In this document: in pieces, positions 43,801-46,800 of the stretch
Layout of the letters: the number at the start of each line of letters is the position of its first letter
How positions within the stretch are numbered: position 1 is the stretch's first letter
Source: Macrostomum lignano
Taxonomy: Eukaryota
Assembly (NCBI GenBank): GCA_002269645.1
Contig: NIVC01001772.1
Coordinates: 103,384-167,383 of the forward strand
DNA length: 64,000 nt
Direction: 5' to 3'
Translations under genes and position numbers: made by a program
Notes under the pieces: model-generated
Databases searched by the model: none
What the model was told of the DNA's origin: nothing
What the model saw: only the letters and a program-made list of their open reading frames with translations

Positions 43801-46800
43801 TTATATCTATAGATGGTGGTCTTACTGCTTTAGTTATTTTTTAGACGTTAATATCTAGTTTAATTGCATTGCATATAAAATTGGTTATTATAATTTGCTA
43901 ATAAATCTTATGGTTATTAATTGAGTGAATGATACTATCTTCAAGTTGATGTATTTGTTTAACTTTATCATGCACGTGTTCTCAATTTGTTTAAAACGCT
44001 TCTCCAAGCAGATTTACTTTAGTGAAGTTCACGCAGAGCACAAAATACGAATTATCTTATAGCAACGTCGTGCAGAACTTCGGCCAAAACGATCCCTCGA
44101 TGCTGCTGCACAATCATCATCATCACCATCGCAATGTTGGCGGTGCCGCCGCCTACCGGCATCGGGGAGGCGGCGGTCACCAGCCTCACTATCCCACTCA
44201 TAGCGCCGCTGCTGCCGCCGCTGCGGCGGCTGCCAAAACGCACCGGGAGCGATCGAGCTCTGCGCCAAACGTGTCCAATTTAAGCGTCAATGTCAGCAGG
44301 CAGGATGGCGGAAAGGTTTGTGCAGTTGCGTTTTAGCTTTTTTAGGGAAAAAAGTCTTTCAAGTGAGCGCCGCCACAGTTGTTTTATCTCTACGGACAAC
44401 CAGTTTTGTTGTTTTGTTTCTTTTAAACTTTTGATTCTTTTTGCTGTCCTTACCACAACGCTACCCTTCTCAAGCCTGTGATGTCAATTTTTTTATCGCC
44501 TTTTAATCGTAGACAGTAGAACAACTAACTAACTATTAATAATAACAATAAACAAAGGACTGCAACTTCGTCAGTCGCATCAACAAACTCTCGAAGCAAT
44601 CGGACCAGATTTGCCAGTTTCCGGCGAAAGTTTCTGCTGCTACCGCCGCCGCCGCCGCCAATTCAGCGTCCTCAACTGCTATCGCTGCCTTCGCCTTCGC
44701 CTTCGCCTTCGACGTTGACGTTCGCAGCTCGACCGCGATTGTCGCCTCTATTAGAATCAGTTGGCGACCATAAATTCGACTGCAGTCATCGGGGCGAAAC
44801 CCGCAACTTTAGGCAGGAGCCAATTGTGGAATTGGGCCGGTGTGTCAGTACGCCGAATGTGCGGCAGTTCATGTCCACCACTGCAGATGGGGATGGCCAA
44901 GCTAGCGCCGCGGCTGGCGTCTGTGTGAGCGCTGGGGTGTCTGGCATCATGGCATGGGGTGGCTGGTAGATATTGGTAGTGTAGATGGTAGATATTGGTA
45001 GTGTAGATGGTAGATATTGGTAGTGTAGATTGTAGATATTGGTAGTGTAGATTGTAGATATTGGTAGTGTAGATGGTAGATATTGGTAGTGTAGATTGTA
45101 GATATTGGTAGTGTAGATGGTAGATATTGGTAGTGTAGATGGTAGATATTGGTAGTGTAGATGGTAGATATTGGTAGTGTAGATGGTAGATATTGCAGTG
45201 TTTGAGATGGATATTGCAGTGTTTAAGATGGATATTGTAGTGTTAGAGATGAATATTCCTGTCTTTGAGATGGATACTGTAGTGTTTGAGATGGATATTC
45301 AATGTTTGAGATGAATATTCAGTGTTTGAGAATTGAGATGGATATTCTAGTGTTTGAGATCGATATTCTAGTGTTTGAAATGGATATTCAGTGTTTGAAA
45401 TAGATATTCAGTGTTTGAGATGGATATTCAGTGTTTGAGATGGATATTCAGTGTTTGAAATGGATATTAAGTGTTTGAGATGGATATTCAGTGTTTGAGA
45501 TGGATATTCAGTGTTTGAGATAGATATTGCAGTGTTTGAGATGGATATCCCAGTGTTTGAGATGGATAATCTAGTGTTTGAGATGGATAATCTAGTGTTT
45601 GAGATGGATAATCTAGTGTTTGAGATGGATAATCTAGTGTTTGAGATGGATTTTTTAGTGTTTGAGATGGATATTCAGTGTATGAGATGGATTATTTAGT
45701 GTTTAAGATGGATATTCTAGTGTTTGAGATGGATATTCTAGTGTTTGAGATGGATTATTTAGTGTTTGAGATGGATAATCTAGTGTTTGAGATGGATAAT
45801 CTAGTGTTTGAGATGGATAATCTAGTGTTTGAGATGGATAATCTAGTGTTTGAGATGGATTTTTTAGTGTTTAAGATGGATATTCTAGTGTTTGAGATGG
45901 ATTATTTAGTGTTTAAGATGGATATTCCAGTCTTTGAGATGGAAATAGATATCGTACTGATCAATATTTCGACAGCTGTCAGTGTCCAAGTTCAGCCTTA
46001 TCAGTAGACTTTTAGTTGGCAAGCCCTGAGCAATAATAGTTTTTAATAAGCAGGTTGCATAATTCTACAACTATAAATTTTGGCTAGCCCACCTCTAACT
46101 GCGGTCAGCACCTGGTAAGATCAGCGAAGTCGGACATTGTGGTAAATCGTTTCATATTTAATCGATTAATAATAAAATATTCGACATTTTATTAAAAAGA
46201 GATTCAATTTATTTTATTGGCATTTTTCTTAGAATATTTCTCTAACAATTTATCCGTTTGCATTTTGCAAAGTTATTGTGCATGCTATATTTTTCAGTGT
46301 TTTCTGGCCTCTAATTTACTTTTTTTACTTTTTTATCATATGTACCGGCGATTGTTTGTATTAGAATTTGGCTTCGATTGTTTTCCTTAAATATTATTAT
46401 CGAATAGAATTTGTTTACCGATTTTCTTAACAATTATTCTGTATAATATTGCCGAAAAACACAGGCGTCCAAGTATTTCAGCCTGGTATGCGTGCAATGC
46501 ATTTAAAATTTGTACTTGTCCAAGGATGAGATAGCATGGCTTCTGAAGCTGTCTATGGCCCAACCATAGAAAAGTGTCTACAAAAAGCCAGCTAACAAAT
46601 AGTCTCTGAGATTTCAATATCCCTAGGAGAAGATAGAATTAACAAAAGCGCTAATAGTGTAGCAGCTAGCATAGCACCAAGTGAGGGTTTACCATAGACA
46701 GTTTTGGGATTGGTCAACATACTTTGGTTCTAGATTCCAGCCTTCCACTCCTGATGCTTTATATAAAACTCCGTGGAAGTTATTTATTAAAACTAACTAT

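Follow-up and report, generated by a model that had tools for sequence, protein, structure and literature searches.

A putative, diverged second CR2-type exon in Raf of the flatworm Macrostomum lignano, a candidate member of a tandem exon pair found in other spiralian Raf genes

The 14-3-3-docking phospho-serine of CR2 is the main lock on Raf autoinhibition, and the tuning of this lock is usually framed in terms of the three vertebrate Raf paralogues. Could an animal vary the lock within one Raf gene, through splicing? The question is raised by a 64-kb stretch of DNA from the free-living flatworm Macrostomum lignano (contig NIVC01001772.1, positions 103,384 to 167,383 of the forward strand; hereafter "the window", whose numbering is used throughout). 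The locus is a single B-Raf-like Raf gene, with 9 coding exons on the + strand (39199-55474). Downstream of its canonical CR2 exon (exon A) lies a second open segment, exon B, encoding a related motif, GRCVSTPNV. A first-pass annotation, made from the sequence letters, had read the two as mutually exclusive exons that give the gene either a B-Raf-type or a C-Raf-type 14-3-3 site. On the sequence evidence, we put the prospect that exon B is a real alternative exon used instead of exon A at about even. Comparison with other genomes makes its most likely ancestor the downstream partner in a tandem pair of CR2 exons carried by the Raf genes of a brachiopod (Lingula anatina), a nemertean (Tubulanus polymorphus) and a bivalve (Solemya velum).

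Re-examination of the two segments upheld all that the annotation had said of their sequence, namely the limits of exon A (44012-44315) and the extension of exon B to 44924 with GRCVSTPNV and a GTGAGC donor. Exon A is bounded by the acceptor ccaagcag/ATTTAC and the donor AAG/gtttgt (slashes mark splice boundaries), and its 14-3-3 motif (44244-44273) aligns to B-Raf 360-370, which includes S365. Exon B, which shares the genomic frame of exon A, occupies a 146-codon stop-free stretch (44529-44966); its motif lies at 44835-44861 and its donor (TGT/gtgagc) follows 44924. The three phase-2 acceptors proposed for it exist, but two of them had been given by the G of the AG (44557 and 44608); the first exonic bases are 44558, 44609 and 44618, for exons of 367, 316 and 307 nt, respectively. 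Another acceptor, at 44513, has the best pyrimidine tract of all but was rejected, a stop occurring two codons on.

The exon upstream leaves a codon split after its second base (phase 2). Exons A and B are adjacent, similar in size (304 versus 307 or 316 nt) and identical in phase, and with the phase-2 acceptors the reading frame is kept by including exactly one of them. Splicing 42748 through exon A to 49434 yields an intact open reading frame (ORF) of 883 aa, counted from M41574; splicing through exon B instead yields an intact frame whose length, 884, 887 or 904 aa, varies with the acceptor. If the two exons are both skipped, or are both included via the phase-2 acceptors, a stop is met within about 100-130 codons. 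Frame arithmetic thus bears out the earlier statement that A or B alone connects the flanking exons and that inclusion of both through these acceptors shifts the frame.

How much of exon B exceeds what chance would supply? Only its core motif and its 5′ boundary do. In the six frames of the 64-kb window, R..S[AT]PNV, or the shorter S[AT]PNV, occurs twice, once in each of the two exons. Depending on which of three motif patterns was scored, the motif appeared in 0.03-0.2% of dinucleotide shuffles of the local 648-nt unique stretch and in 0-1.2% of dinucleotide shuffles of the whole 5.1-kb intron. At the 5′ boundary, the acceptor at 44609 (cag/ATTTGC) matches that of exon A (cag/ATTTAC) at five of six bases, and both exons start with Leu-Phe. 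Taking three to four candidate acceptors and the probability of at least five matches in six bases, we estimate the chance of such an agreement at ~1%. Apart from R..S[AT]PNV and the ATTT(A/G)C boundary, exons A and B share no colinear DNA similarity. Exon B forms a GC island (55-68%), like exon A, within an intron of 20-42% GC, and GC content by codon position gave no frame signal for it. Its GTGAGC is a strong donor, the same hexamer being present at two confirmed donors of the Raf gene. Exon A, for its part, scored E=4.8e-6 with a CR2 profile built from 100 Raf CR2 segments, and p<=0.0015 in composition-controlled local alignments with six spiralian CR2 exons. Another segment of exon B was aligned by phmmer to PQILTSPSPS of B-Raf. 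This resemblance, which extends to Lingula and Solemya, was rejected as evidence: only 4 of the 100 CR2 segments contain a motif of this kind, which occurs 29 times in the window because satellites are translated.

An inverted repeat brackets exon A, with one arm just upstream of the acceptor (43992-44006) and the other just downstream of the donor (44321-44335). The arms match at 80% over 15 nt and include 8 perfect base-pairs (UAAAACGC/GCGUUUUA). Their pairing, as an RNA stem around exon A, is present in the centroid fold, though the z-score of the fold is only -0.69. The repeat could favour exon A skipping, or be due to chance.

Other spiralian Raf genes carry a comparable arrangement. In Lingula anatina, two RefSeq Raf isoforms are alike except for the CR2 segment, which is exchanged between them. 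The alternative CR2 exons distinguish B-raf isoforms X2/X4 (XP_013407069.1, XP_013407071.1) from X3/X5 (XP_013407070.1, XP_013407073.1), and the four isoforms form a 2x2 set, with either CR2 exon and with or without a downstream 35-aa cassette. In a fifth model (818 aa, UniParc UPI00078A02C2) the two CR2 exons occur together, linked through an 11-nt micro-exon that lies between them (GGTACAGAAGG, positions 13059-13069 of the Lingula locus, L001). The micro-exon has good splice sites (ccccag/ and /gtgggt), and its inclusion puts the combination of the two back in frame. In Tubulanus polymorphus, the RefSeq protein XP_074644385.1 includes the first CR2 exon only; a second, unannotated one lies 415 nt downstream of it, with strong splice sites (ttattttacag/T...GAG/gtaatg) and a profile score of E=1.2e-4. 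Solemya velum also has an unannotated second exon, CR2-like and in the same phases, which encodes PEKASSAPNVL with Lys at -3 (Table 1). The Solemya deposited model, KAL5014396.1, seems to have non-canonical boundaries at the first CR2 exon.

In these three species and Macrostomum, all eight CR2 exons are 1 mod 3 long, and in four out of four a distance of 0.3-0.8 kb separates the first exon from the second, downstream one (about 300 nt in Macrostomum). Arg -5 is present in the first exon of every pair; at the same position the second exon has Thr, Pro and Pro in Lingula, Tubulanus and Solemya, respectively, and Leu in Macrostomum. The exon-pair design proposed for Macrostomum therefore recurs with identical phases in three other Raf genes, in one of which (Lingula) the alternative isoforms are annotated. 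The presence of another CR2 exon within several hundred bases after the first is a recurrent and probably ancestral lophotrochozoan feature, and the duplication is probably an older spiralian feature rather than a Macrostomum novelty. Recurrence in three phyla makes it more likely from the outset that the motif in Macrostomum is a descendant and not an accident; exon B is probably part of this old spiralian exon pair. The comparative result, tandem CR2 exons of identical phase in three further phyla, stands without the flatworm data. The Lingula CR2 isoforms are known only as database annotation, the second exons of Tubulanus and Solemya being unannotated, and we found no paper on alternative CR2 exons in any Raf. 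A single CR2 exon was found in the parasitic flatworms Paragonimus and Anoplocephala and in the sea urchin Diadema, even with a loose motif search. The last Raf intron of Anoplocephala perfoliata (positions 12244-12693 of locus L003) contains an open frame with a CR2-core-like sequence (...SVERSSSNPNCVLV, profile E=0.053); lying 9 kb from the real CR2 exon, this frame is likely a chance occurrence.

The Lingula pair, used alternatively in the RefSeq annotation, resembles the putative Macrostomum one in being a tandem of CR2 exons, phase 2 in and phase 0 out, 1 mod 3 in length, with R..S.PNV in each and Arg -5 in the first only. It differs in the shortness of its exons (169 and 121 nt), in their clear CR2 character and in their strong splice sites; its upstream boundary, moreover, is more distant from the CRD by about 25 residues. 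Exon B of Macrostomum is far more diverged than the second Lingula exon, and is unannotated.

What distinguishes the two sites of the Macrostomum gene? The "B-Raf-type versus C-Raf-type" label given to them earlier is not supported, as the choice of Ala or Thr at +1 is not constant even in orthologues with a single CR2 exon: SSSTPNV in Paragonimus, SSSSPNV in Anoplocephala, SVPNV in Hydra and Galendromus. Thr +1 is not diagnostic of C-Raf because it is also found in the sole CR2 exon of Paragonimus. The CR2 site of C-Raf and A-Raf is RSTSTPNV. Exon B has only STPNV in common with C-Raf RQRSTSTPNV, with Leu at -5, Cys at -2 and Val at -1. The label does contain a grain of truth, in that phmmer, run in protein context, aligns GRCVSTPNV to C-Raf 255-263 (S259). 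As read from the sequences, the A/B contrast is that Arg -5 and Ser -2 have been lost from exon B. The mode-1 14-3-3 binding motif is R-S-x-pS-x-P; relative to it, GRCVSTP keeps Arg -3, Ser 0 and Pro +2 and has Cys at -2.

These differences suggest how an exon choice might act. CR2 is a Ser/Thr-rich region whose phospho-serine, by binding 14-3-3, holds the Raf kinase autoinhibited; in Macrostomum it is encoded by exon A. The exon A sequence R-E-R-S-S-S-A-P fits RxRSxSxP, at once a consensus for basophilic AGC kinases and a complete mode-1 14-3-3 site. In exon B, L-G-R-C-V-S-T-P retains only Arg -3, Ser 0 and Pro +2, with Leu at -5. The AGC-kinase consensus is RxRxxS; LxRxxS is preferred by PKD-, AMPK- and CaMK-type kinases. 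The B isoform would probably be phosphorylated by other kinases and/or be held by a weaker 14-3-3 clamp, shifting the activation threshold. As both exons are phase 2 in, phase 0 out and 1 mod 3, a transcript with exactly one of them should keep the kinase in frame, whereas transcripts with neither, or with both through the phase-2 acceptors, would have a premature stop and be directed to nonsense-mediated decay. Exclusivity would in this way be enforced by the reading frame. Splicing of exon B, its exclusion of exon A and all functional consequences are what we infer from these features.

A wider proposal can be made tentatively, with somewhat less than even confidence: spiralians (brachiopods, nemerteans, bivalves and free-living flatworms) would possess an ancient alternative CR2 exon pair in a single Raf gene, with the inhibitory site chosen by splicing. 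The choice would be between RxRSxSxP and a variant devoid of Arg -5, possibly with both in tandem. The pair would have been lost in parasitic flatworms, and Macrostomum exon B would be its most diverged survivor. If this is true, the kinases able to arm the 14-3-3 clamp and the tightness of Raf autoinhibition would vary by exon choice, making the gene a one-gene counterpart of the A-/B-/C-Raf diversification of vertebrates. Ras-ERK signalling thresholds could then be set per tissue or stage through splicing, and the exon pair would be a natural experiment on how far Arg -5 and Ser -2 matter for kinase input and for affinity to 14-3-3. Isoform-specific knock-down is feasible in M. lignano, which serves in the laboratory as a model of regeneration and stem cells.

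Some of these traits have parallels in known systems. The vertebrate A-, B- and C-Raf kinases, like the putative A and B isoforms, have differing CR2 contexts at the inhibitory serine and are differently regulated, but they are products of separate genes, whereas Macrostomum would use exon choice in one gene. In mammalian B-Raf, alternative splicing between CR2 and the kinase domain, involving hinge exons 8b and 9b (the latter also known as 10a), tunes activity (PMC3008692). Exons 8b and 9b are in-frame cassettes downstream of S365 that keep the 14-3-3 site and, unlike the pair considered here, are not duplicates of a CR2 exon. Exclusive exon pairs enforced by the reading frame are a classic product of tandem exon duplication, as in ATE1 (7a/7b) and OGDH (4a/4b) (PMC7797038, PMC7969005). 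The resemblance to these lies in adjacent exons of similar size and identical phases, both or neither of which breaks the frame. The ATE1 and OGDH pairs differ, however, in showing clear homology and mapped regulatory RNA structures or branch points; in Macrostomum the proposed homology is based on a core of 6-8 residues, and no regulatory element is established.

Several observations weigh against the use of exon B in place of exon A. With the CR2 profile the exon B ORF reached E=3 (rank 4 of 1842 ORFs), which is not significant, and its composition-controlled alignments with the six spiralian CR2 exons gave p=0.03-0.47, also not significant. The site itself is without Ser -2 and Arg -5. The 5′ half of the exon is (GCC)n/(GCCTTC)n microsatellite-like, with four GCCTTC units, and reads LLLPPPPPP...; stop-free frames are cheap in sequence of this kind. 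Pyrimidine tracts score 0.35-0.55 at the phase-2 acceptors, versus 0.55-0.75 at six confirmed acceptors, and are surpassed by that of the phase-0 acceptor 44667 (0.65). Strict exclusivity is not assured either, as the phase-0 acceptors 44631 and 44667 permit exon A and a shortened exon B (B') to be joined in frame; nor is it a necessity, as the 818-aa Lingula model with both CR2 exons shows. The two parasitic flatworm Raf loci examined are without a second CR2 exon. Finally, the exon B peptide had no match at E<=10 among 5.8 billion clustered proteins, a degenerate back-translation of its motif stretch had 0 matches in JGI metagenome contigs, and no transcript, expressed sequence tag or protein model with exon B was present in the databases searched, which are without the kinase half of this gene too.

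These negatives weigh little, because the absence of the kinase half shows that the databases evidently contain no Macrostomum Raf transcript, and because a control failed: an exon A-centred, Macrostomum-specific query of 230 aa missed the M. lignano model P0001, to which about 130 of its residues are 100% identical, and brought up only an unrelated weak match. Queries rich in low-complexity sequence are therefore unreliable, and false negatives are possible in the clustered-protein search. Searches with single exons are without power, since exon A itself, when run with phmmer against PDB, matches only His-tags. A phmmer search with exon B of 1.84 billion representative proteins gave one match, P0124, which was rejected as spurious, being a translated tandem repeat matched in nine stretches.

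In a rival reading, exon B would derive from the ancestral spiralian second CR2 exon and no longer be spliced in Macrostomum, its frame and motif being leftovers partly propped by a stop-poor, GC-rich microsatellite. The weak phase-2 acceptors and the non-significant profile and alignment tests fit such a relic, as do the degraded motif (Cys -2, Val -1, no Arg -5), the complete loss of the second CR2 exon in neodermatan flatworms and the use of exon A only in both UniProt M. lignano models. We nonetheless consider a relic unlikely. A 146-codon frame, a strong donor and an Arg -3/Ser/Pro +2 core are unlikely to last long without selection, and the GC island and satellite boundary of exon B resemble those of used exons. 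As for the UniProt models, they are truncated, ab initio-like and run into the intron, and so say little.

Exon B might instead be real and be used differently, with B' (44667-44924, 258 nt, or from 44631) as an in-frame cassette following exon A. The protein would then have two putative 14-3-3 sites about 100 residues apart, and no swap would take place. Such a joint is in frame and without stop, as the first-pass annotation had foreseen, though its coordinates for the two acceptors (44630 and 44666) fall one base short of the first exonic bases, 44631 and 44667. Among the candidate acceptors that keep the frame open, 44667 has the best pyrimidine tract (ccgccgccgccaattcag/C). Cassettes placed after CR2 are common in Raf, occurring in Lingula (35 aa), sea urchin and tick and, as exons 8b/9b, in mouse B-Raf (PMC3008692); the 818-aa Lingula model has both CR2 exons in tandem by way of the micro-exon. 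We find this reading rather improbable, since the frame is open for another 46 codons upstream of 44667, acceptor 44609 copies the boundary of exon A, and the second exon has a phase-2 acceptor at three other spiralian loci. The location of exon B, where three other spiralian Raf genes have a second CR2 exon, tells against plain accident, in which the frame would be open by chance in a GC-rich intronic island with microsatellite sequence, and R..STPNV and compatible AG and GT sites would be present there fortuitously. So do the rarity of the motif in shuffled sequence (at most about 1% for the flanking intron, less for the local unique stretch) and the estimate for the 44609 boundary. Accident would account for the profile and pairwise results, for the low-complexity composition of exon B and for its lack of matches, save for a translated satellite, among the representative proteins; we regard it as quite improbable.

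The gene around exons A and B is a Raf gene, and a single one, as the annotation had supposed. The predicted spliced product aligns with human B-Raf over the whole protein (508 bits, E=5e-151), through the Ras-binding domain, C1 domain, CR2 site, kinase domain and C-terminal 14-3-3 site. The kinase-containing stretch alone (query residues 236-637) scores 428 bits against B-Raf 360-758, the region of the Ras-binding and C1 domains aligns to B-Raf residues 159-280, and the 14-3-3 site of the last exon aligns to RSASEPSLNR of B-Raf. The order of elements is that of the Raf family: a Ras-binding domain followed by C1, a CR2 RSxSxP site, a Raf-type kinase domain and a C-terminal RSxSEP site. Over exon A and exon 2 the window matches two UniProt M. 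lignano models, A0A1I8HCX6 (P0001) and A0A1I8IGQ6 (P0121), at 100% identity, which assigns the gene to this flatworm and not to an arthropod; PF02196 and PF00130 are recorded for the identical model P0001. Both models are wrongly constructed: exon A is entered at an internal acceptor (44064), some of the low-complexity exon 3 is spliced away, and translation continues past the exon A donor into intron sequence (...GGKVCAVAF*, window 44064-44333), so that the kinase half is absent. Two Ala/Val substitutions set the models apart from each other, a sign that there may be two gene copies or alleles. The exons of the gene are listed in Table 1, together with the predicted junctions and the corresponding exons of the other species.

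Table 1. Coordinates of the Macrostomum lignano Raf gene, its intronic satellites and predicted junctions, and of CR2 exons in other spiralian Raf loci (L001, Lingula anatina; L004, Tubulanus polymorphus, OZ123228.1; L006, Solemya velum, JBHNWI010000513.1)
Feature	Position	Strand	Remarks
Raf exon 1	39199-39226	+	start codon, MEISNIIDE; donor G/gtatgt; P0121 peptide located in window
Raf exon 2	40841-40944	+	N-terminal helical region; tttag/AT, AGT/gtaagt; 100% tblastn match to P0121
Raf exon 3	41529-42748	+	Ser/Ala-rich low-complexity stretch, Ras-binding domain (from about 42312), C1/CRD (42543-42689)
Exon A, canonical CR2 exon	44012-44315	+	304 nt, phase 2 in, phase 0 out
Intron between exons A and B	44316-44608	+	AT-rich, unique, stops in all frames
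Exon B candidate, second diverged CR2-type exon	44609-44924	+	phase 2 in, phase 0 out
Alternative reading B'	44667-44924	+	258-nt in-frame cassette after exon A, phase-0 acceptor ccgccaattcag/C
Raf hinge and kinase-start exon	49434-49793	+	poly-Ala; GSGSFG at 49677-49703; phase 0 in
Raf kinase exon	51165-51402	+	VAVLRKTRH...HRDLKSN
Raf kinase exon	51955-52070	+	DFG, activation segment
Raf kinase exon	54439-54705	+	APEVIRM...
Last Raf exon	55283-55474	+	C-terminal 14-3-3 site (55331-55360), stop codon
Predicted junction, upstream exon to A			TACCCGGATGTTGACGGACT/ATTTACTTTAGTGAAGTTCA
Predicted junction, upstream exon to B at 44609			...GGACT/ATTTGCCAGTTTCCGGCGAA
Predicted junction, upstream exon to B at 44618			...GGACT/TTTCCGGCGAAAGTTTCTGC
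Predicted junction, upstream exon to B at 44558			...GGACT/GACTGCAACTTCGTCAGTCG
Predicted junction, A to downstream exon			GCAGGCAGGATGGCGGAAAG/GCCGGGACCAACATCGTGTT
Predicted junction, B to downstream exon			GCGCCGCGGCTGGCGTCTGT/GCCGGGACCAACATCGTGTT
Predicted junction, A to B' at 44667			GCAGGCAGGATGGCGGAAAG/CGTCCTCAACTGCTATCGCT
Predicted junction, A to B' at 44631			GCAGGCAGGATGGCGGAAAG/TTTCTGCTGCTACCGCCGCC
21-nt satellite	42866-43810	.	intron upstream of exon A; TRF
22-nt and 21-nt satellites	44964-45943	.	start 40 nt after exon B donor; TRF
25-nt satellite	48395-49292		
4/8-nt satellite	49816-51154		1.3-kb (TCTA)n array
24-nt satellite	52223-54410		
33-nt satellite	54751-55241		
Lingula first CR2 exon	L001:12709-12877		169 nt, ...RRDRANSAPNVS, phase 2 in, phase 0 out
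Lingula second CR2 exon	L001:13646-13766		121 nt, phase 2 in, phase 0 out
Tubulanus annotated CR2 exon	L004:6680-6848		169 nt, HRERSTSAPNVC
Tubulanus unannotated second CR2 exon	L004:7264-7381		118 nt, KPERSTSAPNVRN, phase 2 in, phase 0 out
Solemya first CR2 exon	L006:42932-43127		196 nt, QRERSTSAPNVC
Solemya unannotated second CR2-like exon	L006:43732-43861		130 nt, same phases

Tandem satellites, each intron having its own, fill six of the eight Raf introns, and the arrays end 10-200 nt from confirmed splice sites. When translated, these satellites give long spurious ORFs. Overlapping open frames of 177 and 190 aa are also found at 47061-47950, in a unique part of the large intron beside a (GA)n run (RERERERE); they may be a transposon remnant. 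Downstream of the Raf gene, a 294-codon open frame (56883-57764) reads MSDSEEQQNLLEQPF... and encodes a poly-Gln stretch and a hydrophobic C-terminal half. It had no match among PDB sequences and is probably the next gene.

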